From assembly GCF_023055435.1 (NCBI RefSeq), contig NW_025964334.1:46686001-46750000 (forward strand): DNA of 64,000 nucleotides. The letters are read 5' to 3'. Numbering within the stretch: position 1 is the first letter of the stretch; every line of letters begins with the position of its first letter. Source of the DNA: Haliotis rufescens (taxonomy: Eukaryota). The translations under genes and the position numbers were made by a program. This document shows, piece after piece, positions 1 to 64,000 of the stretch. The notes below the pieces were generated by a model. It had not been told where the DNA came from. It saw only the letters and a program-made list of their open reading frames with translations, and ran no database searches.

Positions 1-1632
1 ACTTCTTTTACTGACCTTGGGGCTTCCATTGACCTAATGGCTTTTACCTTTTGGTTGTCAGGTTTTATTCCATCTTGATTGATGACAAAACCTAAGTACT
101 GAGTTTCCTCCTTGGCAAAGCTACATTTTGACAACTTGAGTTTTAGTGAATGTTGAATGAGTCGTTCAAAAACTGTCTCGATATGAACTAAATGTTGTTC
201 TTCCGACTTTGAGAATATCAAAATATTGTCTAGGTAGGCTATTGCAAATGCATCGAGACCCTGTAAAACTTCATTCATAAGTTCCATAAAAACTGACGGA
301 GCATTACAAAGTCCAAAAGGCATCACGTAAAATTCAAAAAGACCTCTATGACAAGCTAAAGCAGTTTTTTCTTTATCTTTATCGTCCATTTTTACCTGCC
401 AGTATCCAGACTTAAGATCGAGACATGAGAAGAACTTAGTGTCTCCTAATTGTGTTAAGATGTCATCTATGAGGGGTAAAGGCGTTGAAATAGGACGGCT
501 AATTTTGTTCAAAAACCTAAAGTCCACACAAAAACGCTTCGAGCCATCTTTTTTGTCAACGACGACAATGGGGAAACTCCATGCTGACCTAGAACGTCGA
601 ATGATCTAAGCATCTAACATGTCATCGATCGCCTTATCTACACACCTTGCGCTTGTTAAGAGGAGTTCGATATGGCTTCATCTTGATCGGAACATTGTCA
701 CCTGTGTCTATCTTCATACGTACAGTTTCTGTCTGCCCTAAGCCTAAATCACTCTTTTCAAATAAATCCTTGTTTTGAGACACTAAATCATTTAACCTTG
801 ATTTCAAATGAACTGGAGCATCAATGTCAACATTGAGATCACTGGATATGTACCTATCAGCTAATTCATCAGATAAATTCACTAAGTTTTCAGTCGCTAC
901 GCTCCTTAGCTTCCCTAGTACGCAACCTCTCTTCAACCTAAATGTACGGTTGGTATTGTTGACTAACAGTAATGGGACATTCCTATGTTTGTCAATCTTA
1001 ACAATAGAATTTCCTTTGAGTAGACCTGGTTCATTTGCTGGGTAACTCTTTTCAATTGCTGAGATTTCATACGTGCTTGATGTGTCAAAATATGGTCTAT
1101 TTTTAACCTTTGCCCTTAAGATATTTCTACACTGAGGTTTTACTATTGTATCCGCTGCTAACCTGACTAGAGAAGATATATGGATATCTTCCTCTAGCGG
1201 TACATAAGTTTTCCCTACTCTTAAGCTACCCAAGTCGAAATACACCCTAACACCTGCCTGTGTCAACCAATCATGTCCTAATATAAGATTTCTGTTCATG
1301 TTTTCTACAGCAAGGAAGGTATGGGAAAGATTGACGCCTCTCATCCTAAAGTGAACTTTCACATTCCCATCTACCTGTAACAAATTCCCATTAACCCCTT
1401 GTAAAGCAACTTTCTTTTTGTTTAACGGAAATCTATCTTTTATTGAATCGTACACCCTACGATGCATTATCGACACTTCAGCCCCAGAATCAATTAAACA
1501 CCTCCATTGTTTTTTTCCTATTTTGATACTACACGAATTTGGTCTCCCTGCCACATTTATTGAATGTACTGGGCCATTTGTCGCCTTCTCTCCCTCATCG
1601 GCTTCTTTACGAAGAAGAGAATTTAGTTTCCC
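1..1632 (-). pseudogene. pol: Gypsy pol (protease + reverse transcriptase), disrupted
   Basis: DSG protease motif; RT continues after a frameshift near 634; catalytic YxDD reads YLDN. Confidence 0.9.
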
Positions 1633-2583
1633 TTGTTTTGTTTTCTTGGTGGTCTGTTTGGACAATTTCATTTACAGTGGCCCGGCTGATTGCATAGCCA
1701 ACATACCCTGACCTCTTGCTCTCTCTACTTAACCGCATTAACACGTTTTGATCTGCAATCCCTAGCCCCGTGACCTGGCTTCCCGCATGAGAAACAATTA
1801 CGACGCTGACTAGCATGATCAAGGTCCATAGGCTCTTCTCGCCTCCCGCTATTCGAATCGTGCCCTCTACTATTAAAATCATGCCCTCGGTTACTCGGTT
1901 TTCCCAACCTGAGTTCGAATCTAGCCCTAATGTTTTGTTCAAGCGTGGCCAAAGCCACTGCTTCTTTGAGGGATGTGGGGTTTTCCCTCATAAGTTTTTT
2001 CTGCATGTACTCATGACATCAAGCCATCTATTAAAAAACCTATCAATTGTCTTTGGATGGGGGGATTATCTTCACCGTCCTGCCCTAATCCTTCATAAGC
2101 CTCTTCGGCCAAGTTTAGTAGTCTTTCAGCATAAATCTGAACACCCTCACTATATTTTTGTTTGACCGCCCTTAATAACATAAATGCGTGTTGTGGATCA
2201 CTAATTTCAGCAAACCTGCTCGTTAGCTCTGCCCTTAACTCCTTCCATGTTTTGGCAGGATTATCATCCATATAGCGCTGCACGAAGTAGCTTACAGAGC
2301 CATCACAACTCTGAAAAGCAATTAGCTTTTTACTGGCGTCTTGATTTGCGCCAGTTAGCAATGCATATTTTTCTACAGATTTGATCCATTTTTTTAAATC
2401 TTTCGGGTTCCCCCCAAATGTTTTTATAGCTTGATTCACCACCTGTGCACTTAGCATTGTATTTACAGCAGCTAGCCTCCCGTTTATTTCATTTCCCTGT
2501 GCCCCTAATGTTGAAGTTACTGCTGATATCTGCCCCGTTATTTCTCCCGCTAACCCTTGTAAGAATTGTGCATATTCTGCCAT
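1623..2583 (-). pseudogene. gag: Gypsy gag with two CCHC zinc knuckles, disrupted
   Basis: Capsid-like ORF (WIKSVEKYA...TWKELRAELTSRF); frameshift near 2010; first knuckle intact, second reads CWLCNQPGHCK*NC; ends GN*. Confidence 0.85.
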
Positions 2584-2697
2584 GTTGCTCACGTAGGTAC
2601 TTGCAAAAACCCAAAGAATCACCTTTTTGCGAGTCCCGGGACCAATTCCCTCGATCCTAGTCGTTTCCTGGGGTCCCTCTCCTTCGCTCCTTAAGGT

Positions 2698-2716
2698 GAT
2701 CCTGGTCTCGGCACCA
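2698..2716 (-). promoter_or_regulatory. Primer binding site, tRNA-Phe-like
   Basis: Minus strand TGGTGCCGAGACCAGGATC a few nt inside the LTR end; close to the complement of the tRNA-Phe 3' end (TGGTGCCGAAACCCGGGATC). Confidence 0.7.
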
Positions 2717-2721
2717 GTTTA

Positions 2722-7559: not shown

Positions 7560-10040
7560 ATTTCAAATTGTATAACCTGTACATTTGGAAACTAATTAAG
7601 CACCAGCAAAATCAAAATGACACAGAATGAGAAGTTTTGAAAATGAGATGTATCCATACATTAGATATTATGGCCCTTTTTCCACACCATACCAGTGCCA
7701 ATACCACTGTCAAGGCACTTCATGTTGCACATACTGCACGTGGAGCACAATACCCATGACATGTCTGAAAACCCATATTGGTCGTGAACATTGCAGGTCC
7801 ACATTTCTCACTCAGGCTGCATGCTTATTATAAAGCATTATCATGGCACGTTGTAGATTGTCTGAAGCGTTTAGATGGTAGATTATTTGAATGAAAAATG
7901 CAGGAATGTCTTGTAGGGAAAGTGGACGTCACCATACTGTAATTTCAAGATTAGAGCAGAAATACCGAACTACAAATGAAGTTGTGGACAGGCCACGCCC
8001 AAGTCAGCCTCATAAGGCACAAATGAGAGAAGATGCAGCGTCATTAACACTCGTTAGACGACGTCCAGTGTACAGAACAGAACAGAACTTTATTTACTCT
8101 CAGGCCGGGATCCTCGGCATATGAGGTACAAATATGCAAACAGTAAATACATAAGATGGCGGGATGGTTTACATGGAAGATTTTACAGTTTTCATAATGA
8201 CATTACAGAATGTACAGAGTTTCTTAATAACATTTATTTTTTTACAATTAAAAAGTTCTTTGAATTTTAATATATTTGGGTTTTTAGCATATGAAATTGG
8301 AACATATAGTTTCCGTTGGGGTTTGAAATAAGGACAAACAAAAATAAAATGAAATTCATCACCAACATCGCTCATGTCGCAGAGTTTACACGTTCGTTCC
8401 TTGACAGGGATGTTGTGCCACCTACCTAGTTCAATAGGTAAATGGTGGCATGAGGTTCCAAACAGAAGGAATTTTACAGCCAACGAGAAAGGGATAACTA
8501 ATTTATACTTTTCAAGGACGAGTTCAGTTTTAAATATGCGATATGTGATACCTTTAGAAGAATGTGTAATCTCTGCATTCCATGTATGAGTTGCTATATC
8601 TGATAATGTTAACGACATGATAGATTTAAGGGCATTAGGAGGAATTGCTTGTTGGCTTAACCATGTTAACCAATAGAAACTGAAGCCCGTTTCATTGAAA
8701 ATACTTTCCAAACATTTTATCCATTTTTTACAGCTATTGTTTGTACAGACTTCAATGTATAACATTTGATATAGAATTCTTGATAACTTTTGTTCTTTGC
8801 CAGATAAGACCTTAGCCCCAAAACATACCATTCGGCATTTGATAGAATTACTTAAAGGTACTCTTCCAAGTTCTCCATACAACATGTATAAATGTGTACT
8901 TTTCCTAATGGGAAGTAATTTACGTGGAAAGTTAAGGTGAACAGATTCAATTTGTTTACAATTTTCAAAACCCCAGATTTCACAACCATATAATAGAATT
9001 GGGTCTACCATAGCATCGAAGAGATATAATTGACATTTAATGGACAGATTAAATGTTTTACTTTTGCGTAATACAAAGTACATGGCCTTAGTGGCAGATT
9101 CACAATTTGCTTTAATAGAAGTTTTGAAAGAGTTTTTATTTGTAAAGTGAATTCCAAGATATTTATAATCAGTGACATATTCGATTGGTGAGCCATTTAG
9201 TAATATATGTTTACTCTTGTCTCTTTACAACTTGTCTGTACAACACCAAAAACTATAATTTTTGTTTGACTAGTACTGATATGCAATCTCCATTTTCTGC
9301 AGTGAAGTGAAAAATATCAAACATATTTTGTAAACTTTGATGATTAAAAGCTAACAAAACTGTACCATCTGCATATAGTAAAGCGAACAAAACAACGGAG
9401 AGATCTAACAGACCATTAAGTGACTGACATTGAATAGAAACACTAGGGCAGTTTTGAGAGTATAAAAACGGTTCCAGATCATTTAGAAACAATGAAAACA
9501 ATACCCATAGAGTTTTAAAGGCACGGTGGCTGGCAGGTACAGAGCGATCTCAAACAGAACCATCAGAAATCGTCTGAAAACAGCTGGATGCAGAGCCAGA
9601 AGACCAATCAAACGTCTCTTGTTAACTCAGACCCGTAAAGCGGTTCGTATGGTCTTATACCCCGTTCACATGCACAACATTTACTAACGTAAGTAACTTT
9701 ACACATGTGTAACTATACATACGTCCGTATATGTAAATTTACTATGCGATCACATGAAAAAACATCTTAGGTGTGTAAATAAAGTATGTAAATTGTGTAA
9801 GGCACACATATTCGTCAGTCTGTTCACGACTTTCAACACAAAACAGGTTGTTTTCCAATCAAAGTTGAATGAGAAGAGAGTAACGTCTAAATTGGAATAT
9901 TGCATCATGGTGGAGAATCCACTGTTTGATGAAAGTCGGTTTTTCTTGCATATGGTAGACGGCCGTGCACGTGTCTGGAGGCGGGCACATACTGTCATGG
10001 CTGCACACAACATTCTCGAGACCCATCCATTTGGTAGGGG
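7560..10040 (+). mobile_element. Tc1-like remnant copy B, interrupted by a LINE (8070-9505) and a ~220-bp insert (9657-9880)
   Basis: ISRLEQKYRTTNEVVDRPRPSQP HTH region; LFDESRFFLHMVDGRARVWRR; collinear with copy A on both sides of each insert; left boundary approximate. Confidence 0.8.
8070..9505 (-). mobile_element. 5'-truncated non-LTR retrotransposon (RTE-X-like), RT C-terminal part
   Basis: LFSLFLNDL...LLYADG (YADD decayed); PILLYGCEIWG; LPIELGRW..ERTCKLC..GDEFHFIFVC; 3' end AATAAA followed by (TTCTG)n. Confidence 0.9.
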
Positions 10041-10573: not shown

Positions 10574-12195
10574 AACAAGGCTTGACAAGAACTCCTGTAT
10601 ACCCTGATCCTCAGTGACCATGGTTCAACACCATGGTTCAACACAAGGCTTGACAAGAACTCCTATATTACCTGATACTCAGTGACTACACTGTTGAAGG
10701 CCATGGTTCAACACAAGGCTTGACAAGAACTCCTGTAATACCTGATCATCAGTGACTACACTGTCCAAGGCCATGGTACAACACAAGGCTTGACAAGAAC
10801 TCCTATATTACCTGATCCTCAGTGACTACACTGTCCAAGGCCATGGTACAACACAAGGCTTGACAAGAACTCCTGTAATACCTGATCCTCAGTGACTACA
10901 CTGTCCAAGGCCATGGTACAACACAAGGCTTGACAAGAACTCCTGTAATATCTGATCCTCAGTGACTACACTGTCCAAGGCCATGGTACAACACAAGGCT
11001 TGACAAGAGCTCCTGTAATACCTGATCCTCAGTGACTACACTGTCCAAGGCCATGGTACAACACAAGGCTTGACAAGAACTCCTGTAATACCTGATCCTC
11101 AGTGACTACACTGTCCAAGGCCATGGTACAACACAAGGCTTGACAAGAACTCCTATATTACCTGATACTCAGTGACTACACTGTCCAAGGCCATGGTACA
11201 ACACAAGGCTTGACAAGAACTCCTATATTACCTGATCCTCAGTGACTACACTGTCCAAGGCCATGGCACAACACAAGGCTTGACAAGAACTCCTGTAATA
11301 CCTGATCCTCAGTTACTACACTGTCCAAGGCCATGGTACAACACAAGGCTTGACAAGAACTCCTATATTACCTGATACTCAGTGACTACACTGTCCAAGG
11401 CCATGGTACAACACAAGGCTTGACAAGAACTCCTATATTACCTGATACTCAGTGACTACACTGTCCAAGGCCATGGTACAACACAAGGCTTGACAAGAAC
11501 TCCTTTATTACCTGATACTCAGTGACTACACTGTCCAAGGCCATGGTACAACACAAGGCTTGACAAGAACTCCTACATTACCTGATACTCAGTGACTACA
11601 CTGTCCAAGGCCATGGTACAACACAAGGCTTGACAAGAACTCCTATATTACCTGATACTCAGTGACTACACTGTCCAAGGCCATGGTACAACACAAGGCT
11701 TGACAAGAACTCCTATATTACCTGATACTCAGTTACTACACTGTCCAAGGCCATGGTACAACACAAGGCTTGACAAGAACTCCTTTATTACCTGATACTC
11801 AGTGACTACAATGTCCAAGGCCATGGTACAACACAAGGCTTGACAAGAACTCCTATATTACCTGATACTCAGTTACTACACTGTCCAAGGCCATGGTACA
11901 ACACAAGGCTTGACAAGAACTCCTGTAATACCTGATCCTCAGTGACTACACTGTCCAAGGCCATGGTACAACACAAGGCTTGACAAGAACTCCTTTATTA
12001 CCTGATACTCAGTGACTACACTGTCCAAGGCCATGGTACAACACAAGGCTTGACAAGAACTCCTTTATTACCTGATACTCAGTGACTACACTGTCCAAGG
12101 CCATGGTACAACACAAGGCTTGACAAGAACTCCTATATTACCTGATACTCAGTTACTACACTGTCCAAGGCCCATATACAACAGAAGCTTGACAA
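10574..12195. repeat. 70-bp tandem satellite (~23 copies)
   Basis: Unit ACACAAGGCTTGACAAGAACTCCT(G/A)TA(A/T)TACCTGAT(C/A)CTCAGTGACTACACTGTCCAAGGCCATGGTACA; period 70 (10861 vs 10931). Confidence 0.97.
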
Positions 12196-15284: not shown

Positions 15285-15458
15285 NNNNNNNNNNNNNNNN
15301 NNNNNNNNNNNNNNNNNNNNNNNNNNNNNNNNNNNNNNNNNNNNNNNNNNNNNNNNNNNNNNNNNNNNNNNNNNNNNNNNNNNNNNNNNNNNNNNNNNNN
15401 NNNNNNNNNNNNNNNNNNNNNNNNNNNNNNNNNNNNNNNNNNNNNNNNNNNNNNNNNN
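15285..15458. other. Assembly gap (174 N)
   Basis: Run of n. Confidence 1.
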
Positions 15459-19300: not shown

Positions 19301-22060
19301 GAGGAGATGATGTTTGTGATATATATGTTAACAACATCTACCGTATGCATTGTGTTTACGACATTCGTATCCTGGAGAGTGACCTCCCCTGAATAAACGT
19401 TTTCACACCACATGACATTCATCATGTTAGTCGCATATGTTACAATGTTTACAGTTACAGGGCTACCGGGTGGCCACACTGAAATTAAATTGTGATGCCT
19501 TGAACTAACTTGAACTCGAAATCTAGAAAGGTTAAGGACGCTGCTGATGCCAGATAATGGACGACTTATGACCTGAAAGGCCATGAGAGCAAACAAGTTA
19601 ACGATTAGTGAGGACATGATCCATTGATGTGACTAAGTGAGTAAGTGCACATACAAGAGTCATTCTTCAAAATGCAAGCAGTGCTCAGACTTTACCATTT
19701 TGTTTACAACATGACACGTGACATCCAGAGAGTCTAGTGCTGCTGAACTGTTTGGTGACACACTTATAATGTGACACACTAATAATGTGACACACTTATA
19801 ATGTGACATACTTATAATGTGACACTAATAATGTGACACAATAATAAAGTGTCACACTAATAATGTGACACACTAATAATGTGACACACTCATAATGTGA
19901 CAAACTAATAATGTGACACACTAATAATTTGATACACTTATAATGTGATACACTAATAATGTGACACACTAAGAATGTGACACAATAATAATGTGACACA
20001 CTAATAATTTGATACACTTATAATGTGATACATTCAAATGTGACACACTTATAATGTGACACACTTATAATGTGACAAACTAATAATGTGACACACTAAT
20101 AATGTGACACACTAATAATTTGATACACTTATAATTTGATACACTAATAATGTGACACACTAAGAATGTGACACAATAATAATGTGACACACTAATAATT
20201 TGATACACTTATAATGTGATACATTCAAATGTGACACAATAATAATGTGACACACTAATAATGTGACACAATAATAAAGTGACCCACTAATAATGTGATA
20301 CACTAATAATGCAAACAGTAGAAGCTTTTGTTAACGTGCGCCATGTACATGTTCAGAAGCTTGCAGAACCAGAAGAAAAACAGTTTGCATCTATAACTTA
20401 ATGAACCAGAAGTGATGAAGTGGCTTAACTGAGCTCTGTAACAGTATGGATTACATATATATGGCAATCTTTAACTGGTCACCAAAATGAAATAATCCAA
20501 TTGTTAACATTGTGGCTACATCAGTACTTGATTCTGATTAGTCAATCAGAGGTTGTCAATCACAATGTACCCCCTTTGATTGAAACAGCTATTTGACAGC
20601 CTCATCACCGTGGAAGGTAATATTAATAGAATAGTACTTTTTTCAGTCATTGTCGGTAGGCATACTTAAATAATTATATCAACAATTATAGGTTACAAAA
20701 GACAATATTTAAAGGATGTGTGGCTATACATTTTGTGCAGAAAATATCTATTTTAAGTTTTGAGGAGAACAGAGAGCTTGGTATTTGGTGCTTTTCTATA
20801 TACAACTGTGATGTCATATCTTTTGCGTCACAATGTGCGATATGACGTTATAACGGTGATGTGTGGTGTACAACGAAAGCTTTGCAACGATTGCTTTGTT
20901 TTCTTTACATGCTTCAGGCGTTCCCACCTCATGTTAGCTTACTAAGTTGCTGTGCTTATATGCTTTCAATGGCTATCATGTGTTCGAGTGAAGTATTACC
21001 ATGTAAACAAACTGCTTGAGTATATAAAAAGCCATAGTTTGTTTAAAGGCTGTTGTCGGTGATTCCGTAATTCAGATCGACAACCCACTCAAAACACTGC
21101 GCGTTCGGTTCCAAATTCAATTTAGCGTGCTTAAATCTACATGTAACCTAGCTCTACATCGAAAATACAGTATGTTAACCTCCATTCTACCATGTCCACT
21201 CAAATCCCATCAACAGAATTTCACAAAAGTTATTTGGGGTAGCACCTACTTTGCCAGTCCCTGTCTTTATGTAGCATATGGAGTTTAGTTCACTTAGAAA
21301 ACTGACAAATGGGAGCGTGATAATAGGTTTGGAGACAAAGTAAGGAAATGTACAACTTTATGGATAAAAACTGCTGGTTTGTTGCATATAGCGACGTTAT
21401 CAAGCTGGAGCTAGAGCACTGAGTTATCGCAATATGCAACAAATCAGAAGTTGTTATCCATAAAGTCGTACATTTTCTTATTTACTCACCAATTTCAAGA
21501 AAGCCAATGAAACAGTTATATAGATAAGGTGATGAAAAACTGTCATTATTCTGCTTTTTCTTGCCAAATATCTAAAAATCATAAAAACAACCATAGAGCA
21601 GTTTTTGGATTATCGCGTCTTATTAGTTTTTTCATATGTTGAACAGTTTGACGAGTCAGCGTTTGATATCGACCAATGCATGATCGCAAAAAGGGAAACA
21701 TCTTGGTATTTTCAGTGTTAATAAAAACATCAATGTCTGTGGGTATAACATGAATAATATGCACCTCCTTCTACACAGAGGTTGTATCAGACAAAACAAT
21801 ACAGATGCACATATACATTTCCAGTCTCAGTATGGGGTCCCATAAGATTTATTACAGATTGGTCCAGGGATGCGGGATGAGGGATGCTTATAGGAGTTGG
21901 CTATAATGGGGTGAGAGCTATGAAGGAGTTAAGGGGGTTTCACCCCTTCTCTTAACAATGTGGAATACAAAAGGGAGTTAGCAGGGCCAGCAATCGGTAA
22001 AGTACATCTCTCACATTATTTTAATCACAAATATTCCCAATTCAATTGACACCCTTCTGA

Positions 22061-22126
<66 letters not shown>

Positions 22127-25100
22127 CTGGTAGCTACCTGCAATCCTGTAGACATCTATCAGCTGGGTCGGCCACACCCGGCTCTCTGCGTCTGAGTTGT
22201 TGGTCATGTTGGGCTTTCCAATGCCCAGCCATGAGACACCGGGCTGGTACGTCGCGAAGAAATTGTCAAAGTCTGTCTGGTTGTATGTCTGATACACCAG
22301 CTGCCCCAGTGGGTTTGTCTTGCTGGCCCAGTTCAACTGTGGATCACATGTAAACATACATGAGGAAACTCAGTCATTTAAGGGTATCAATATCAGCCAA
22401 ATCTGACATACGGGATGAGCTTATTATTTCCAAAGTTCATTATTCACATGGGTAATAACGATGATTGCCACTCATGTCTTTAAAATTGTTTTCACTATAT
22501 CTGACATTTTGCTCCATCAAACTTGTCATCAGGTGATATACAAGTCTTGGGAAAGGAGTTTTTGTTTATGAATATAATGATTTGTAGTAAGTTTAATCTT
22601 CCTACCATACCAGATAATGTGTTCATTAATTAAAACTGAAGTCTTCTTAAATATTGATATTTGAAATCAGGAAGCACCATATTAGAATTGTTGGCCTGCA
22701 CCCCCAGAATCAGCTCTAAGGACTGGGAATGAAAATTCTATCTGTCAGAGAACCAATTTCTAAAATTCTTTCACAGGTAACAGATACATTTTTCTGACAT
22801 AAACAAGATATAAACAAGATATAAAAACAAGATATAAACAATACTTCTAGTTTGTATGACAACACATCCCTGTGTGTATCTAGTAATGGAATGGTTATCA
22901 AGGTACATCATGGCTCCCTATCTCACTACAACAGCACCATACACTCACCTTGGTATATGGGTCAGACAGTGTGCTGAGCGCCCCATCAGCCCTGAACCCA
23001 AACTTGTAGCCGTTCTCACAACTCTGTATAGATGTAGGGTCAGACAGCTTGCTGTAGCCTGCAGAAACAACATCACATACCGGTACTGAACCCAGAACAT
23101 GAAGCCGTTCTCACAACTCTGTATAGATGTAGGGTCAGACAGCTTGCTGTAGCCTGCAGAAACAACATCACATACCGGTACTGAACCCAGAACACGAAGC
23201 CGTTCTCACAAATCTGTATAGATGTAGGGTCAGACAGCTTGCTGTAGCCTGCAGAAACAACATCACATACCGGTACTGAACCCAGAACATGAAGCCGTTC
23301 TCACAACTCTGTATAGATGTAGGGTCAGACAGCTTGCTGTAGCCTGCAGAAACAACATCACATACCGGTACTGAACCCAGAACACGAAGCCGTTCTCACA
23401 AATCTGTATAGATGTAGGGTCAGACAGCTTGATGTAGCCTGCAGAAACAACATCACATACCGGTACTGAACCCAGAACATGAAGCCGTTCTCACAACTCT
23501 GTATAGATGTAGGGTCAGACAGCTTGATGTAGCCTGCAGAAACAACATCACATACCGGTACTGAACCCAGAACATGAAGCCGTTCTCACAACTCTGTATA
23601 GATGTAGGGTCAGACAGCTTGATGTAGCCTGCAGAAACAACATCACATACCGGTACTGAACCCAGAACATGAAGCCGTTCTCACAACTCTGTATAGATGT
23701 AGGGTCAGACAGCTTGCTGTAGTCTGCAGAAACAACATCACATACCGGTACTGAACCCAGAACACGAAGCCGTTCTCACAACTCTGTATAGATGTAGGGT
23801 CAGACAGCTTGCTGTAGCCTGCAGAAACAACATCACATACCGGTACTGAACCCAGAACACGAAGCCGTTCTCACAACTCTGTATAGATGTAGGGTCAGAC
23901 AGCTTGATGTAGCCTGCAGAAACAACATCACATACCGGTACTGAACCCAGAACACGAAGCCGTTCTCACAGCTTTAGTTTAATTGTGGTCACCCACACTA
24001 TGATTTATACAAGCCCATCAGTACACCACGTAAACACAGAGGCCTCCGCAAGTAGCACAGGCTGAGAAGTCAGCTACTGGAAGGTATTGTTCTGAGGGAG
24101 TACGTTGTTGTTGTCTCCCTGCTTACTCTCCCTACTATCATTATACCAACCAGAATGTCACTATACCTGCCAGACTGTCACTATACCTGCAGACTGTCAT
24201 TATACCTGCCAGATTGTCACTATACCTGCCAGACTGTGACAATACCTGCCAGATTGTCACTATACCTGCCAGATTGTCACTATACCTGCCAGATTGTCAC
24301 TATACCTGCAGACTGTCACTATACCTGCCAGACTGTGACAATACCTGCCACATTGTCATTATACCTGCAGACTGTCATTATACCTGCCAGATTGTCACTA
24401 TACCTGCCAGACTGTGACAATACCTGCCAGACTGTCACTATACCTGCCAGATTGTCACTATACCTGCCAGATTGTCACTATACCTGCCAGACTGTGACAA
24501 TACCTGCCAGATTGTCACTATACCTGCAGACTGTCATTATACCTGCCAGATTGTCACTATACCTGCCAGACTGTGACAATACCTGCCAGACTGTCACTAT
24601 ACCTGCCAGACTGTCACTATACCTGCAGACTGTCATTATACCTGCCAGATTGTCACTATACCTGCCAGACTGTGACAATACCTGCCAGATTGTCACTATA
24701 CCTGCCAGATTGTCACTATACCTGCCAGATTGTCACTATACCTGCAGATTGTCATTATACCTGCCAGACAGTCGCTATACCTGCAGCCTGTCATTATACC
24801 TGCCAGATTGTTACTATACCTGCCAGACTGTGACAATACCTGCCAGACTGTCACTATACCTGCCAGATTGTCACTATACCTGCCAGACTGTCACTATACC
24901 TGCCAGATTGTCACTATACCTGCCAGACTGTCACTATACCTGCCAGACTGTCACTATACCTGCCAGACTGTCACTATACCTGCCGGACTGTCACTATACC
25001 TGCCGGACTGTCACTATACCTGCCAGACTGTCACTATACCTGCCAGATTGGGCTTGCTGGCCTTCAACATGTCCCATTCCGACTTCACCTCAGCCATGAG

Positions 25101-28100
25101 AGGGTTCACATCGAGGGCGTCCAGCGCCGTGTACGCAAACTGTCGCTGCTCCACCCATGACGAGATGCCGTCCAGGAAATGCTGGTCTGAAGGAGAAGGA
25201 CATATCACCATGACAACTGTGTGGTATGGACTTCATTCCACCCCTGTCATCTCTGATCATAAACCATTTTGTTGTACAACTGAAATGAACATTGTTAGAA
25301 AATAACAGATCAGAACACTGTGAACCTGTACATCTTAAAGGCACCATAGCTGGAATCATCCATACTGTGTTTCAGCTTCATACACCTTCTAGTTTCAGAT
25401 GAGATGTTTAAAATGCAAAAGTTAATGACAGATGGACAAGTGTTCGCATTTCGTGCCCTTTGACAAAATGTGACAGTCCTTCACTATATCATATCACATT
25501 ATCAATGTTGGCCTGAGTTTTGAAATGTGAACAGTTATTTGTCAAAAAGCATAAAGGTGATTTGTTTTTAAGTCCTGAAATTTGGTATAAAACATAACCC
25601 TCATGAACATTGATAAAATGATGTCTAGAGTCTACACATCCAAACTCGAAAGGTTCTACTTTGATTGATGGAAACTATCTTGTGATTTTCATGGTAACTG
25701 GTTGCATTATTACCTTTGAGCTTCATGGCATTAATAAATCGGACATTTGTCCAGTTGAACTGGTCAAAGACACTACTAAGTCCACACGTGTGTTCCCCCA
25801 TCTTGAGGAGGAACCTGCTGGAGTTGTAGAAGGCGGGGTCAGACAGCGAACACACTGCAAGAGAGGAGAGTCGCACTGATATAGTTCAAATGTTTAGTTT
25901 CCAGTGCAGCTCATGTCCTTTGCTGTCAGCATTGCTATTGAAGTCGGACAAAAGTATTAAAGGATGATTGAAAAGACTACAAATTGAGCATTTTTCTTAC
26001 ATAATGTCATTCAAACATGAATTTATACCAAATCTGCATAATTGAATTTTGAAAATAATTTGTAATAATTGTAATTATGCTCCTAAACCTACAACACTTT
26101 AGCCATGCCCACTTGTATGCATATTTATCTTTTTAGCAGTAGGGTTTATGTGGCTGTGATGTTATACCAGACATTCTGCTTTGTGTTGATCATTCGTGTT
26201 TACGGTATCGACTGGAAAGTGAAGAAAAGTGCCATATTTTGAATGGAGTTGCAGTGACAATATGCTGTATTGGGTGCACTTCCAGTGCTACAAATACTTT
26301 TGGCCTTCATTTTCATGAATTTCCCTGCGATCTGCCAAAACGTAAGCTATGGCTGGCATATTGTCAACGTGCTGATGTCAAACTCAAAGACATAAGCAAA
26401 TACAGCATGTGATGCTCCTTACATTTCTCAAAGAAGAATTATGAAGGGGATCCAGAGTTCATGGCACAATATGGCTACATGAAAGCTTAACCCAAGCTTT
26501 TTAAGGATGCTGCACAGGACATTTCCCTGGCTATCAACGGCACGAGCAGGAATAAGGTCACGAACAGTGCTAGGTTCACCAAGAGGGGGCATTTCAGAAG
26601 CGATAACCGTTAGAACAAATAGAAGTGAGTGAAGTAGATATGATCTTGACAGACAATATTAAGTTTTATGATATTACTTGCTCGCTTGAACCTCTCACAG
26701 TTTGCATTTCCTGAGTTTGTTGGTGTAGATCGATTTTACTGTACTTTTTCAAGGATGTCTTAGGTTTTGGCAGTGGGCTTGTCATTCATTAGAGATTGGG
26801 CATTCCTTTTACATACACTAGTTGCAAGGTTGTTTGGTTCTTAAATAAATAGAACTGTCATAATTGTTTATGATTTATTTTTTGTAAAATTAATTAAAAT
26901 GTGAAATAAAATCATGAAGTCTAAATTAATTATTCCCGGTTTTAGGATTTGAAAGGAGCATATGATAGTTTTAAAGCAACATTTCGACAGGCGATTATGC
27001 TTGTATGAGGCGACTAACGGGATCAGGTGGTCAGACTCGCTGACTTGTTTGATGCATGTCATCGTATCCCAATTGTGTGTATCAATGCTCATGATGTCAA
27101 TCACTGGATTGTCTGGTCCAGACTCAATTATTTACAGACCGCTGTCATACAGCTGTAATATTGCTGAGTGCGGCGTTAACCAACAAACAAACAAACTTCA
27201 ATATCCATTAATAGCAATATAAAGTATGTGTAGTAACTTTTTAAAAAATCCTTTAACAAATTGAAACAAGTAACTTAATATCCGCTATGTATCTAAATCT
27301 GTAACAATGTATTGTTGTAGGAAACTGTGTGAAATAGACAACAGCTAAATACAAACTCTGAGCCTTACATATACCACTAAAAGAAAGTTAATGACCTATT
27401 CAAGGATTAAAAGTCTCTCTATTCAAGGATAAAAACTCATCCTATTCAAGGATTAAAAGTCTCTCTATTCAAGGATTAAAAGTCTCTCTATTCAAGGATA
27501 AAAAGTCATCCTATTCAAGGATTAAAAGTCTCTCTATTCAAGGATAAAAAGTCATCCTATTCAAGGATTAAAAGTCTCTCTATTCAAGGATAAAAAGTCA
27601 TCCTATTCAAGATTAAAAGTCTCTCTATTCAAGGATAAAAAGTCATCCAATTCAAGGAATAAAAGTCTCTCTATTCAAGGATAAAAAGTCATCCTATTCA
27701 AGGATTAAAAGTCTCTCTATTCAAGGATAAAAGTCATCCTATTCAAGGATTAAAAGTCTCTCTATTCAAGGATAAAAAAAGTCATCCTATTCAAGGATTA
27801 AAAGTCTCTCTATTCAAGGATAACAAGTCATCCTATTCAAGGATTATAATTCTCCCAATACAAGGATTATGAGACATAACATTCTTCTCAGGAACCTTAC
27901 CTTTCCCTGCCAGACATTTTGTACGCGCACGGAGGAAAGCTCTCATTTCCGCTACTTTCCGTGGATCAGACCCAGCTCCCTGTATCCAGGTGTCTCCGAT
28001 CTCCTTGGTAACCACAGGAAGTTGGGCCTTGACACTCTGTGCGGCCTCCACAAATGCCTCAAAAGTAGAACCCTGGACTTCTGCATTTGGGAAGATTGCC

Positions 28101-31100
28101 CTCGAAATCTCAAAGTTGGATAACACTTCCTGGAAAAAAAATAAAACATTGCAACATCATGTGCAAAGCTGAACAGTCCACTGTGCTGGTGCTGAACCTT
28201 CTTGGTGACAATTGCAAACACAGCAGGCTTTGAATGTGTTTATGAGTAAGTGTGTAGTACCATCATCATACCAAGTTCATATTATAACAATCACAATGGT
28301 TTACAGATCTTTTCTTGAACAAAAAGCAGGAAAAAGATCAAAATATATATAAATTAATAATTTTGAAAGCTTGTTTATTTTTATAGTGTTAAACAGAAAT
28401 TATTGTTGTTTGGGTGAAAGAAGAACATTTTTCTTTACTGAATTTCAATAAACAATATGATGGGAATAAAAATAGACTATTCTCTTTGTTCCAAATCCAC
28501 ACCTTGTGGAACCATCAGTCAAGTAATTAAAGTAAAACAACCAGTGAAATTCACCTTCACAGTTTCCGGTGGTCCCGAGTTGTCAGTGCGGAAAGCAAAG
28601 CACATGGCGTCCGCCAGCCCGGGGAATATGACACAGTTATCAGCCGACAGCCCACCGGGGTTGGCGGGGTTTGGACCTGGGTTCTGTGGGTATCCGACTG
28701 AAACAGACTCTTCAGTTGTAACGTGAAAATGAAAGAAATGAGCACTGAGGGTGAAGACAAAGGGTGTTAACAAGCTAATAACTGTACACTGGAAACAGTC
28801 CTTGTTTCCAAATTTACTTAATTGTTTTAATCGGAGTTCCAACACAAACACAAGGAAAAAAGTGAGCAGGGCTCACTAATACCGCGACATCGACTCCAAC
28901 ATAGTTCTATGTTCAAAACACACACAAAAAAGAAAAAGAATTCTCAGAAAATCCACTTATCAACATCAAACTGTGAACTGCATCTCTTCTATTTGTATGG
29001 AAACTGTTCCCTAAATTTAAAAAGAATCCATACAGTAGTTTTCAAGTTTTATTAAAAAGTAAAAGCATTCTTAGCAAAAAAATGAAAAATAGCTGTATTT
29101 TTATTTTTCATAAAATACACATATCAAAATCCATGTACTAGTTCTCAAGATACAGGTCACACAAATGATTGTAAAAATATACAAATATTGAAATCAACCT
29201 CTGCACTGCACCTTCCCTATTGGCATAGATAGTGTTCAGGAAGTTTGAAAAAAATCTATGCAGTAGTTTTCAAGATATAGGTCGCACACAAAAAATGTCA
29301 TCGGAAGGATGGACGGACGGATGGGTGGATGGACAGAGGTCCTTGGTATAACTATGTATCCCCACCCTTTTAGGTCGAGGGTATAACAAAACAGGACTGA
29401 GACAATAATCAAAATGCATAGATTGATTCAAGGTAACAATAAAAAATAAACAAAAATGCGTAACATATATGTGATGTCTGATGAAAATTAAATGCGCAAA
29501 GCAAAATTATCACATTTGATACTGGTGTTGAAAGAATAGGACTCACAAGGGTTCCACATTCCAATGACACTTGCGCCCTGGAACTCCCATCGGAAGATCT
29601 TGGGGACAGCCGGGGGAGCTGACATGGGGTTGACCCCCACCGATACAGCAGCTATACCATGCTGAACGAGCAGAGGCAGCAAGGCTTGAGTCATACCTGC
29701 AAATACAGAGTGAGGTCAGAAACAGTAAGATCATCAAACACAGAGTGAGGTCTGCAAATACAGAGTCAGGTCAGAAACAGTCCAGTCATCAAACACAGAG
29801 TGAGGTCTGCAAATACAGAGTGAGGTCTGCAACCTGAGTGAGGTCTGTTAATACAGAGTGAGGTCTGCAAACACAGAGTGAGGTCAGAAACAGTGAGGTC
29901 ATCAAACACAGAGTGAGGTCTGCAAACACAGAGTGAGGTCTGCAAACACAGAGTGAGGTCAGAAACAGTGAGGTCATCAAACACAGAGTGAGGTCATCAA
30001 GACAGAGTGAGGTCTGCAAATACAGAGTGAGGTCTGCAAACACAGAGTGACGTCAACAAATACAGAATGAGGTCTGCAAAATACAGAATGAGGTCTGCAA
30101 ACACAGAGTGAGGTCTGCAAACACAGAGTGAGGTCTGCAAATACAGAGTGAGGTCAGAAACAGTGAGGTCATCAAACAGAGTGAGGTCTTCAAATACAGA
30201 GTGAGGTCTGCAACACAGAGTGTGGTCAACAAATACAGAGTGAGGTCTGCAAACACGAAGTAAGTTCTGCGACGCAGAGTATTTTGGAGGGCTACCAACT
30301 ACCTGTCATTTCTCTGACAGACAATGGGAACCTCCTGACAATGCAAAGTGTTTAGTGTTAGGATGTTATAGATTTGGGTGGGGAGGGTGTGTTGTGTGGT
30401 AGGTTTGCCATTTTAGAAGATAACCACCCATCTGACTCATCCCTGACTGACTGTTCAGAATAGAAGACAACCACGCACCCGGTACATCCCTCTGACTGAC
30501 TGTGGGGAACTTCCTGACAATGCCTAGACGTTTATCCAGGTCCTGTCCTAGCTGAAGCCCAAACTCCACCATAGCAGTGTCCAGCATCTCAAACTGCATG
30601 TTCATCGGTCCAGCATGCCAGCTGATGTCCCCCAGCTGAGCAGCAGCCACAAAATCTGACACAGCGTCTTCACCTGGGCACTGAAAGGAAGGCTATGACT
30701 CATGACAACTGGGGGTTTACAACTGTCATGATGACAATGGTGTGGCAGACACAAGTGTTAACATACAGTTTTGTTGTACATATGTTTTATCTATTTGAGG
30801 TCTGTAATATTATTTTAAGTTGTTAGTAAAGTAGGTTCTTAGTTCAATATCTATTGTGGGCTTCTGGATTAGTTTACTTATAATGTAGAGGGTGGTTGGG
30901 TTGGTCCTAGACTGTCTTACAGACCCGATACAAATATATATGAAATACAGCCCATGCAAGTCTATGGTGTTTGGCAAGTCTAGACTACTGCAGTATCTGA
31001 AAATGAAGAGAGTCACTGGGCTCCCTTTTATTACATTTTTATTAAGATAACTGAACAACTGTTTTTCTGTACAATATGTTCATTTCAGAGACTAGATGTT

Positions 31101-33918: not shown

Positions 33919-35069
33919 CACCACCTTGTTAAAGTTGTTATTTTTGTAGCATTAACAGAAATAACAGAAACAGTATATGTACCTCAGACAAGTCATGCTT
34001 TATATAATCTGAGAATAGTTTATTGTAGAAATTAGATTATGTGGGCCCAATTAAACCACTCAATTAAATCACATATCAGCCAATAAACTTTTGTCATGCA
34101 CACCAAAATATGTTTGTTTTGGAAGACGCGTGTGGCGTGTGACTTCAGCACTTTCACTTTGAGTTTGACACTTATAAATAGATCTACTTTCTGCAAATAT
34201 TATGATTTTTTCTCCCTCGGAAAATAACTAAATGTACCTTAGAAAATTGATATTGGCAACAAAATCGTATTCATTTTACTTGTCCTCTAACAGCTTTTTA
34301 AGATTAATGCATGCAGGCCTGAGTCTTGTATGTAAAATAGTTTACTTTTCTATTGCCTATCATATTCTGTTTAATAACAAATACTTTTGACGCTCCTTTT
34401 AACATTAGATACTCGTTGATTCCGCATAGCTGGATATCATAATTAAATGATGCACTGCAACACCGCTTGTAGTTGTACATTCCCTGTAAATACACATGAC
34501 AACATATACTTACTGCAATAAACAACCACTTAGTTTGCATGTTCAGCAGCGAGCGTCCTCCCCTCTTTATTTTGTACACAAAGTGTCATGTGCTCGCTTC
34601 CTTATCAGTGACCAATGAAAACACAAGAGAAATCCATATCCGGCTCCATACAGCCCAGTTCATACCTGACACTGCATAGAGTTTTAAAAGCACCTTCACA
34701 TGTTTCCGTGCTCGTCGATAGCAGTATTTAATATTTAGTTCCATAGTTACTTGTTCGGTCTAAAGATGAAAGCTCTTGTTGCTATAATAAACTTTCTGGA
34801 AATACAACACAGGATCTAACAATAATAATATGAGGCCTCTATTTCTCAACACATTAGTTATCATCGCGTGTTAATTCCGATTCTGAATTTGGTTTGGCTG
34901 TTGAGGTGTATTCCATTATGAATTTCAGATCAATTTGGCAATGCCTTCTGAGTACTGCATATGAAACAACAATCAAAAACACAAATAGTTAATTAAAAAA
35001 ACTAGAAGTGAAGCCAGTATACAACGTTAACTTCACTGATCATACCAGCTAGGCAAGCTAAAATCCCAA

Positions 35070-35795
35070 AGCGGCAGACGTGGGAGAACGTTATGCACGC
35101 AACTGTATTGTGGAGAGGAATCGATTTGGAGGTGGCTCTGTGATGATTTGGGGTGGGATAACAGCACGGCACCGAACCCCTTTGGTGGCTGTTCAGGGCA
35201 ATCTCACCGGTGTTGGCTACAGAGATCAGATTCTGAGGCCTGTGGTCATTCCTTTCCTGCAACGTCATGGTCCGGGATTGACATTTCAACAGGACAACGC
35301 TCGTCCTCACACGGCTAGGGTCGCAATGGATTTCCTTCACAATAACAATGTCATGTTACTGCCATGGCCTGCAGTTTCTCGAGATCTCTCCCCAATAGAG
35401 CATGTGTGGGATGAAATGGAGCGCCGTCTGCGTCGTCTTCCACATCCTCCAGAGAACGTCCGTGACTTGGCACAGGATTTGAGGAGGGTATGGCAGGCCA
35501 TTCCCCAGGCCTTCCATGCCCATTTGGTGGACTCCATGCGTCGCCGATGCACTGCTGTGATTCACGCAAAGGGTGGTCATACCCGTTATTGAATTTGTGA
35601 CTTTGTCGTATGACCCCCTACTCCATTTTGATCTTCTGACGTCATCGTAACAGATGTTGTTCAGGTCCCGTTGACATTTTCTTATGGTCCGATCATTCAG
35701 CTGCTACAGCGTCTGCATCATTTTGTTCTTGCTGTGTTGTATTTCAATCCAGAATATATTTTCTCCGTGCACAGTTTCTTTATGTGGCTAGTATA
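35070..35795 (+). mobile_element. Tc1 transposase 3' half (DD34E) with right end
   Basis: FGGGSVMIWGGI, FQQDNARPH, WPAVSRDLSPIEHVW, AVIHAKGGHTRY; 5' half absent. Confidence 0.93.
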
Positions 35796-38554: not shown

Positions 38555-39460
38555 GTCTCCAATCACTGATCGCCACGATTTGTCAAACATTCATTCGCTC
38601 GACGGGGCATACTGCGTATCAGTTTCCCAATGGCGATTTGAGGGAGGCTGTTCCACTCAACCTGCAGCACCTGGCCTAGTTCAGCCAACATGGTCGGCGG
38701 CCTATGACGTTGACGCACACGTCTCCCTGTCATATCCCAGACGTGTTCAATGGGTGGAAGGTCTGATCTCATTGCTGGCCCTGGCATGCTATTGATGTGC
38801 TGCTGGAGATGAGCACTTGACGATTCGTGCAAGGTGTACACGGGCGTTGACGTCCTGAAAGATAAATCGTCGACCCACACGCCTTACAAACGAGACAACA
38901 AAGGGTGTCAGTATGTTGTCCCAGTAGTACTGTCCAGTGACCCTTTCCTGCCCAATATGGAGTGGGGTTCGCTCAGTCATAGTGATGCCACCCCACACCA
39001 TAACCGATCTGCCGCCAAATCTGTCACGAGGTCTCACGTTGACATTGGCTTGACGTTCATTGATATCTGTTGGCAATATAACGAGTTGTAAGGTGCGGCA
39101 TATAACGTAGCCGTCGAGCATGGGGATGAGCTGCATGTAGACGATTTCAAATCGTCAGACCCGCAATTCGTACTTCACTCGCCTGATGAAAGTTTGCAGC
39201 AATTCGATTCCCCGTTTGGACTCGATTTCGTAGAGCGTGGTTACGGATCAATCGATCTAGTACTCTTGACGTTGACCTTGGACGCCCTGAATGGAGACGG
39301 GGTCCATCGTCAACATTTGGGGTTTGTTGGTACCTGTTCCATAGTCTGCTAATCGTATACTGTGAAACATTGAACGCATTGGTCACGGCACGCTGACTTC
39401 TGCCAGTTTCCAGCATGCCAATATCCCGCAGGCGCTACGCGCGCTTCAGACGCCACATCG
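38555..39460 (-). mobile_element. Degenerate Tc1 transposase
   Basis: MLETGRSQRAV HTH; GRPRSTS; FGGRSVMVWGGI; FQDVNARVH; SDLPPIEHVWD. Confidence 0.9.
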
Positions 39461-62894: not shown

Positions 62895-64000
62895 ACAAGT
62901 CAGTATCTCCATGTGCAATGATGACTGCCGTGCAACGTCGATACATGGATTGGATGAGGCGGTTGGTGAAGGCCATAGGCACCTGAGCCCACACTCTCAG
63001 GAACGCCTGACAGTTCAGCTGCAGTTGTCGGCCTTGGTCGGTCGTCCCACAGGTGCTCAATGGGATTTAAATCGGGACTGATGCCATTCTGCTGGAGAAA
63101 GTCTCTTGTTGCTCTCACAGTGTGGGCACGGGCGTTATAATGCTGAAACTTTTGGTTGCAGCGACGCGCCAAATGAGGTATGGCGTGTGGTCTCAAGACT
63201 TGATCAATGTACCGAGCTGCTGTGACACCATTGCCTCTCCCTGGACCGATGTTCTGGAAGATTACAGGGCCGACCCTCTGTGCAAGACCAATTCCACCTC
63301 ACACCATGATGCTTGGACCACCCCACGAGTCTCTCTCAACAACACAAGCATCCGGATAACGTTCCACACGGCGTCGCCGGACTTTCTCTTTGCCATCTGC
63401 TGTTGAGATACAGTAACGGCTCTCGTCTGAGAAGAGGACTCTTCTCCACTGCAGGTGGCTCCAATGTTGGTGCTGTGTTGACCAGTGAAGACGGTCCCGG
63501 CGATGACGTGGTGTCAGAATGGGCCCTCTGTGTGGCCTGTGACAGTGGAGGTGTCTGCTCGTCAATCGTCGACGCACGGTGTCAGCACTAATGTGCCGCT
63601 GGTGTGTCCCCATTGTCTGTCGAGCAGTTTCCGCAGCAGTAACAAAGCGATCTTGAAGATGCTGTCGCACAATCTGACAATCCTGATGTCGGGTGGTGAC
63701 CCTTGGTCTTCCACTACGTGGTCGGTCATCTGTAGTGTTGGTGGTCTGGTACCGTTACTGGAGCCTGTATATGGTCCTTACGTGGACATAAAATGCATTG
63801 GCTACTTGCCGGGCGTTTTGTCCAGCTTGAAATTGTCGAAGGGCTTGGTGTCGCTGATTTCTTGTCAATCTTGGCATGTGGTAGCAATTCAATAACGAAT
63901 GATTGTTATACGATCTGGGTGGATTTTTATAGGGCAAGAAATGGGAGAACGCGTGTGCATATCAATTTGCACGGAACTCACGTGCATCGGATCACCATGG
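62895..64000 (-). mobile_element. Degenerate Tc1 element, near full-length transposase; 5' end runs off window
   Basis: MPRLTRNQRHQAL HTH; ISADTVRRRL; WRRVLFSDESRY; WGGPSIMV; FQHYNARAH; SPDLNPIEHLWD. Confidence 0.92.

Follow-up and report, generated by a model that had tools for sequence, protein, structure and literature searches.

The window, a 64,000-nt stretch of a Haliotis rufescens contig, carries on its minus strand a gene of the DUF5054 family, and intron 8 of this gene (phase 1) is occupied for most of its length by two tandem arrays of its own splice sites, one of the donor and one of the acceptor (Table 1; slashes in sequences and peptides mark exon-intron boundaries or the positions of introns). 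The exons were searched individually, one at a time, with orthologous proteins that are predicted gene products of other species; aligned to the Haliotis orthologues, exons 8 and 9 abut at the position of intron 8. Joining of the two outer junctions gives the product ..KPNLAG/YSKLSDP.., which is colinear with the predicted proteins of H. cracherodii, H. asinina and H. rubra. The assignment to the DUF5054 family is based on the full-length orthologues; when single exons were compared with Pfam, the sole match was that of exon 10 to DUF5054, which was below threshold. The Rfam search of positions 22000-26000 returned noise on a (TA)n tract and nothing else. The locus is single in the one assembly examined.

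Table 1. Features of intron 8 and of related junction arrays in the DUF5054 gene (positions in the window).
Feature	Position	Strand	Size or composition	Basis
Exon 9	22949..23058	-	110 nt	tblastn of orthologues; sequence reading
Acceptor array	22992..23970	-	10.3 units of 95 bp	TRF; unit listing
Intron 8	23059..25039	-	1,981 nt	position and phase common to three paralogues in the same genome
Spacer, the only unique part of intron 8	23971..24133	-	163 nt	gap between the two TRF arrays
Inverted copy, in the spacer, of the donor-array variant unit CTGGCAGGTATTGT	24077..24090	+	13/14	repeat search
Donor array	24134..25047	-	~46 units of 20 bp (19 bp in 7 units)	TRF; unit listing
Exon 8	25040..25186	-	147 nt	tblastn of Haliotis orthologues P0001 and P0152; sequence reading
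Acceptor-like array of intron 3	29698..30270	-		TRF; sequence reading
Decayed single extra copy of the last ~42 nt of exon 3 plus GT (ACAG/GTAGTT)	30300..30343	-		sequence reading

The donor array, for which Tandem Repeats Finder (TRF) gave a period of 20, 46 copies, 89% matches and a score of 1422, is composed of the unit CAATCTGGCAG/GTATAGTGA, that is, the last 11 nt of exon 8 followed by the first 9 nt of intron 8, and it displays a 218-bp higher-order period besides the 20-bp one. The 3′ end of exon 8 reads ...AATCTGGCAG/GT, its last 11 nt belonging to the first repeat unit, and the true donor is the terminal unit of the array. Downstream of it lie 44 decoy AG/GT sites, 30 of which have the 9-mer of the true donor, CAG/GTATAG, and 8 of which are identical to it from -11 to +9. 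Elsewhere in the genome the 20-bp unit finds only loose matches (71-78%), to 20-bp arrays that have a consensus of their own (TGGCAGGGTACAGTAGAGTC), and a dispersed 20-bp satellite was rejected as the source of the array on this ground. On a rough estimate, a few matches of 15-16/20 are expected by chance, given how numerous 20-bp arrays are in this genome. The 11 exon-derived nucleotides in the unit argue for a local origin.

The acceptor array (TRF period 95, 10.3 copies, 98% matches, score 1853) is composed of a unit that joins the last 27 nt of intron 8 to the first 68 nt of exon 9, and here too the true site is the terminal unit. Nine decoy CTGCAG/ acceptors precede the true one, without a mismatch in the 27 nt upstream; the first 50 nt of exon 9, read as identical to the decoy copies, differ from them by 0-2 mismatches per copy when counted separately. 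Every unit also contains the sequence CCG/GTATGT, located 74 nt past its acceptor. Unit variants alternate along the array, and substitutions are clustered next to the unit edge. In a search of the 1.33-Gb genome the 95-bp unit was confined to this locus, and insertion of a transposon, an introner or a dispersed repeat was rejected as the source of the arrays because of this confinement and the low identity of the 20-bp matches. The inverted copy found in the spacer forms seven arm pairs with 93% complementarity. An earlier note on this DNA had described intron 8 as consisting mostly of tandem copies of its own splice sites, with about 45 donors and 9 acceptors; the TRF arrays bear out this description, and its coordinates and counts proved right within a few bases.

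The consequences of using the decoys were assessed by pairing the 45 donors with the 10 acceptors and counting stops and frames in all 450 combinations. Only one combination, that of the outermost sites, meets no stop and keeps the frame across exon 9, which confirms the claim of the earlier note that no other donor and acceptor give an open product of the correct phase; two further pairings are open but frameshifted. Use of decoys is therefore expected to yield frameshifted or stop-containing transcripts that would be degraded. In the predicted mRNA the most upstream donor would be joined to the most downstream acceptor, and precedent makes it plausible that exon definition or 5′-to-3′ donor selection could achieve this. 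The donor may be picked by a first-come, 5′-to-3′ selection of the kind demonstrated for IVS7 of human F7, in which the most upstream donor alone is used in a scanning-type manner (PMC1557585). The true acceptor may be chosen through exon definition, since no other acceptor has the complete exon 9 behind it, with the strong donor AAG/GTGAGT directly after this exon. Each 95-bp unit, however, pairs an acceptor with a decent donor at a distance of 74 nt, so that simple exon definition would not obviously skip the units. A search for transcript-derived short protein fragments across the exon 8/9 junction found none.

Junction arrays are found elsewhere in the same gene and in its paralogues. The last ~570 nt of intron 3 comprise ~27 acceptor-like units (...CTCTGTGTTTGCAG) and reach precisely to the true acceptor of exon 4. 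Intron 3 also harbors, ~180 nt inside it, the decayed extra copy of the end of exon 3, which represents a duplicated junction that never underwent amplification. Three paralogues that had not been selected for this feature have four more junction arrays, and one of their introns, 5.3 kb in length, consists only of its two junction arrays, with 19 donor and 98 acceptor units. The arrays of the paralogues are unrelated to those of the DUF5054 gene and lie at other junctions, with none at the equivalent of intron 8.

The copy numbers at intron 8 rest on a single assembly, and a mis-assembled array of a comparable kind has been reported in the draft genome of amphioxus (PMC3087553), so that the arrays or their lengths might in principle derive from mis-assembly of repeats. 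Such an artefact is very improbable, considering that both arrays have an internal variant structure (the 218-bp higher-order period and the alternating variants of the 95-bp unit), that similar arrays occur at independent loci and that the unique flanks are colinear with the orthologues.

The reading that we favor, at a probability of roughly 0.7, is that two independent minisatellites of the 'mirage' type arose in an old and once short intron, and that they are neutral or slightly costly by-products. The occurrence of intron 8 at the same codon and in the same phase in three paralogues, in which its junctions are ordinary, indicates that the intron is ancient, and for this reason, as well as because of the abutting alignments of exons 8 and 9 to the orthologues, the Rogers model, in which introns are gained by tandem duplication of an AGGT-containing segment, was rejected. 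A 20-bp segment over the donor of exon 8 and a 95-bp segment over the acceptor of exon 9 would each have been duplicated in tandem, and slippage or unequal exchange would then have amplified both segments, expanding the intron from ~200 nt to 2 kb. The 163-nt spacer is probably the remnant of this ancestral intron. Intronic minisatellites arise very frequently in this genome, and a seed duplication readily takes in a junction when the intron is short. The authentic junction would persist as the outermost copy, because only that copy is joined to the real exon.

Among the three readings offered in the earlier note, a mutational process that amplifies junctions is the one that fits best, since arrays recur in the gene and its paralogues; this process may or may not prefer junctions to random positions. 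It is conceivable, although rather unlikely, that the origin of the arrays was itself biased, with duplications seeded preferentially at junctions by some process linked to transcription or splicing, such as breaks or stalled forks at exon-intron boundaries. In the three unselected paralogues, a junction is contained in 4 of the 18 arrays, where uniform seeding predicts 0.64 (P ~0.003), and 7 of the 18 lie on a junction or within 32 nt of one, where 1.2 are predicted (P ~0.0002). The clustered substitutions beside the edge of the 95-bp unit and the inverted copy in the spacer would also fit an error-prone, template-switching repair. However, the excess vanishes if long introns are largely composed of younger insertions, because P becomes 0.30 when ancestral introns are capped at 500 nt, and the sample is 18 arrays of one gene family. 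The excess over random seeding in the paralogues is therefore suggestive and depends on assumptions. Furthermore, the share of exon sequence in the unit ranges from ~3/24 to 68/95 across the junction arrays, which means that the breakpoints of the units fall at variable positions relative to the junction, in agreement with random seeding, and many arrays of the same genes lie well inside introns, one of them 32-kb. That a junction-preferring process in abalone genomes lengthens short introns by building up copies of the introns' own splice sites is a tentative proposal, which we consider doubtful.

A regulatory role, also raised in the earlier note as control through NMD tunable by copy number, would require that the arrays shift splicing to NMD-targeted isoforms and that the number of copies set the level of expression. 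The decoys are identical or near-identical to the true sites, and every pairing that involves a decoy gives a frameshift or a stop, which speaks for such an attenuator. Nothing was found that supports tuning by copy number, however, and the attenuator is improbable on several grounds. In the precedents that have been studied the decoys are silent, or the first two only are used (PMC1557585; PMC3087553). The paralogues have entirely different, unrelated arrays, which lie at other junctions and never at this one, so that nothing is conserved, and an identity as high as 98% among the 95-bp units points to turnover in the recent past, not to a device under maintenance. Most likely, the two minisatellites of intron 8 are neutral or slightly costly by-products and not a control device, and their function is probably nil.

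The locus presents splice-site competition in an extreme natural form, in that 44 donors and 9 acceptors identical or near-identical to the real ones are contained in one intron of a gene with an intact frame, and only the outer pair is productive. If the outer sites are indeed used, a mollusc would join F7 as an example of first-come selection of donors, and the principle would also cover acceptors, for which precedent is thin. The arrays also suggest a route by which introns may grow, namely amplification of their own ends. Should the bias toward junctions prove genuine, a mutational mechanism left open in the amphioxus literature would be indicated, and a junction-biased process would provide, as a test bed for splice-site choice, natural arrays by the hundred in which identical splice sites compete.

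The arrays of intron 8 are 'mirage' minisatellites, a kind of element that has already been described, here in an extreme, two-sided form. Each is a head-to-tail minisatellite with a unit that spans an exon-intron boundary, with the authentic junction in the terminal position and with the AG/GT signals kept, and these are structural features of mirages. The original mirage paper is reportedly that of Canestro et al. 2002. In amphioxus, mirages with units of 10-160 bp have been found at 5′ or 3′ boundaries in Adh3, troponin C, the globins BflGb6/9 and PGBD5, and normal splicing was reported by the authors (PMC3087553; PMC3902484). They resemble the arrays of intron 8 in the boundary-spanning unit, in the retention of the AG/GT signals and in the location of the authentic junction at the edge of the array. 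They differ in belonging to a cephalochordate and in having few copies (2-6 for the globins), compared with 46 + 10 in the gastropod intron, in which both junctions are amplified and almost no unique sequence is left.

Donor-spanning VNTRs of human genes provide the second precedent and include those of F7 IVS7 (37 bp, 5-9 copies), IFI6/6-16 (25 pseudo-sites), CBS IVS13, LMNB2 and PDGF intron 4; splicing at the first two decoys also occurs in IFI6 and CBS (PMC1557585). Because the first monomer of these VNTRs spans the exon-intron boundary, the exact donor is repeated downstream, and this arrangement, typified by F7 IVS7, is found in intron 8 too. The human VNTRs, however, occupy the donor side only, without a matching acceptor array in the same intron, and they lie in vertebrate genes for which experimental splicing data are available, whereas intron 8 is described from its genomic sequence. 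A third comparison concerns recursive-splicing (ratchet) sites, which the 20-bp units resemble in that each contains a fused AG/GT. Unlike ratchet sites, the units lack a polypyrimidine tract before the AG (pyrimidines make up 8 of the 18 preceding nucleotides), and sites spaced 19-20 nt apart are too close for stepwise removal of an intron; a recursive-splicing array was therefore rejected. No report of junction-spanning minisatellites in molluscs was found in the literature searched. What is new in intron 8, relative to these known systems, is the phylum (the host is a gastropod), the copy numbers and the amplification of both junctions of one intron.

Intron 8 of the DUF5054 gene (1,981 nt, phase 1) consists, as the earlier note had described, of two tandem arrays of its own splice sites flanking a small unique core (see the table), and without both arrays it would be about 200 nt long. 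The 20-bp unit of the donor array is exactly AATCTGGCAG|GTATAGTGA, that is, 11 nt of exon 8 and 9 nt of the intron, and the 95-bp unit of the acceptor array combines the final 27 nt of the intron with the initial 68 nt of exon 9. The numbers given in that note, about 45 near-identical donors and nine near-identical acceptors, agree with the count: 44 decoy AG|GT sites, 30 with the true 9-mer CAG|GTATAG and eight identical over 20 nt, and nine decoy acceptors, which match the true one at all 27 upstream bases and differ from it at 0-2 of the first 50 exon bases. From base 51 on, the nine decoy copies of exon 9 (up to window position 23970) diverge from the true exon (22992-23058); only three changes set them apart, clustered within 12 nt at the 3′ edge of the unit (GGCTACAAGTTTGGG against GGCTTCATGTTCTGGG), and the other 77 nt match fully or almost fully. 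In the spacer, positions 24077-24090 match a variant donor-array unit, CTGGCAGGTATTGT, in inverted orientation at 13 of 14 bases (chance probability roughly estimated at ~0.003); this inverted copy may be a relic of fold-back or template switching at the origin of the donor array. Both the clustered changes and the inverted copy would fit error-prone, template-switching repair, as leads rather than evidence.

Positions of exons and arrays of the DUF5054 gene (window coordinates) and of arrays elsewhere in the same genome (C, contigs; L, loci in them)
Feature	Position	Strand	Description
Exon 8	25186..25040	minus	3′ end, AATCTGGCAG|GTATAGTGA
Donor array	24134-25047	minus-strand gene	period 20, 46 copies in the assembly, 89% matches, 218-bp higher-order period
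Unique spacer separating the two arrays	23971-24133		163 bases
Acceptor array	22992-23970	minus-strand gene	period 95, 10.3 copies in the assembly, 98% matches
Exon 9	23058..22949	minus	
(TA)30	22064-22124		starts 13 nt past the exon 10 donor (CAG|GTAGCTACCAGG, then the TA run)
23/46-bp minisatellite	27396-27869		~20 units; starts 32 nt past the exon 6 donor, junction outside the array
Paralogue A array	C556:20334614-20335439 (L026:1614-2439)		79 bp x 10.5; 60 nt of exon 2 + 19 nt of intron
Paralogue B, intron 2	C594:12371676-12377004 (L037/L038)	minus-strand gene	43-bp x 19 donor array, 46-bp x 98 acceptor array
Paralogue B, exon 11 donor	C594:12325243-12326114		24 bp x 36; starts on GAG|GTGTGTAG
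Paralogue B, one intron	C594:12334674-12366684 (L034-L037)		single 41-bp unit x ~766 (32 kb); starts ~80 nt past the donor
Another 20-bp array	G000 C135:7205347-7208283 (L011/L012)		at least 147 units of TGGCAGGGTACAGTAGAGTC

The exons were searched one by one and not as a joined gene model. The last exon retrieved a 750-residue Haliotis asinina protein (P0001, XP_067655022.1), and most exons in the window match the H. cracherodii orthologue (P0152) at 95-100% identity, which places the source of the window in an abalone very near H. cracherodii. These orthologous proteins carry Pfam PF16477 (DUF5054); 13 exons were placed by tblastn on the minus strand, from 33873 to 16377. The gene is flanked by transposon-like open frames (window 3-2718, 8172-9224, 35062-35589, 38792-39434 and 62903-63754), judged by eye to be reverse-transcriptase-like and gag-like or like Tc1/mariner-type transposases. 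A 70-bp x 23 array (10575-12195) and an N gap (15285-15458) also occur in the window.

When all 45 x 10 combinations of AG|GT with CTGCAG| sites were joined by script, the outermost donor and acceptor were the sole pair that remained in frame through exon 9 without stops, as had been claimed, and any pairing that involves a decoy either shifts the frame or runs into a stop. Across the exon 8/9 junction, the orthologues carry the sequence that the outer pair encodes (..KPNLAG|YSKLSDP.. in H. cracherodii, otherwise slight variants of it); no short protein fragments derived from transcripts were found at this junction when they were searched for. By analogy with human F7, the first (most upstream) donor would be selected, and the last acceptor would probably be chosen because no other copy leads into the remainder of exon 9 and the strong donor AAG|GTGAGT behind it. 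As a caveat, the inner sites would be favoured if the nearest sites pair across the intron. Every 95-bp unit also contains CCG|GTATGT, 74 nt past its acceptor, and pseudo-exons are therefore conceivable.

The position of intron 8 is ancient. An intron lies at the same codon and phase in three paralogues in this genome (C556, 20.34 Mb; C594, 12.33 Mb and 7.97 Mb), where its junctions are ordinary and without an array; the outer sites are thus the ancestral ones, and a newly gained intron is ruled out. A search of the whole assembly (1.33 Gb, 615 contigs) found no further copies of the 95-bp unit outside the intron 8 locus, and the 20-bp unit is matched elsewhere only by a few 20-bp arrays, at 71-78%. 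One of these, on contig C135, has its own consensus, with 15-16 of 20 positions identical to the donor unit. These resemblances are probably due to chance.

Arrays of this kind recur in the same gene and in its paralogues. The last ~570 nt of intron 3 are ~27 acceptor-like units that end exactly at the true acceptor, and a lone, decayed duplicate of the end of exon 3, plus a GT, lies 180 nt into this intron. The three paralogues, none of which was selected for junction arrays, were modelled as well. Paralogue A has an array whose unit combines exon 2 and intron sequence. In paralogue B, the donor array of intron 2 lies at exon 2, has units containing G|GTAAGT and is followed after ~12 nt by the acceptor array, which ends in exon 3, so that this 5.3-kb intron consists entirely of copies of its own two junctions, has no unique sequence and is more extreme than intron 8. 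Another array of paralogue B starts on the exon 11 donor, and several further arrays start 16-32 nt from a junction. The (TA)30 run is another repeat that hugs a junction; the 23/46-bp minisatellite and the 41-bp array are also listed in the table.

Whether minisatellites are preferentially seeded at splice junctions was tested by collapsing every array to one unit and placing seeds of the observed unit lengths uniformly in each gene. For the 18 arrays of the three unselected paralogues, this model predicts that 0.64 would include a junction, and four do (P = 0.003); it predicts 1.2 at a junction or no more than 32 nt away, and there are seven (P = 0.0002). These values take the present-day long introns at face value, however, and the excess fades when ancestral introns are capped: for the four junction-spanning arrays, P becomes 0.04, 0.09 and 0.30 at 2,000, 1,000 and 500 nt, respectively. 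In addition, the exon share of the unit varies from ~3/24 to 68/95, so the breakpoints have no fixed place relative to the junction. A seeding bias is possible but unlikely, and a very high rate of minisatellite birth acting on short introns suffices as an account.

The intron 8 arrays probably have no function. Their value is modest: they offer a natural array of competing splice sites and one more indication that junction arrays are common in this genome. The arrays are real and striking, yet they are a new case within a described class, the mirage minisatellites, whose unit spans an intron-exon boundary; our literature search found no reports of junction-spanning minisatellites in molluscs. 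In amphioxus globin genes, mirages occur at 5′ as well as 3′ boundaries, with Adh3 as an earlier case; most copies retain AG/GT, RT-PCR indicates normal splicing, the clusters are unstable in length, and the mechanism is described as unknown (Ebner et al., PMC3087553). Troponin C and PGBD5 are further mirage genes (Pavelitz et al., PMC3902484), and in human F7 (IVS7), IFI6 (25 pseudo-sites), CBS, LMNB2 and PDGF the first monomer of an intronic minisatellite likewise lies across an exon-intron boundary (Borensztajn et al., PMC1557585).
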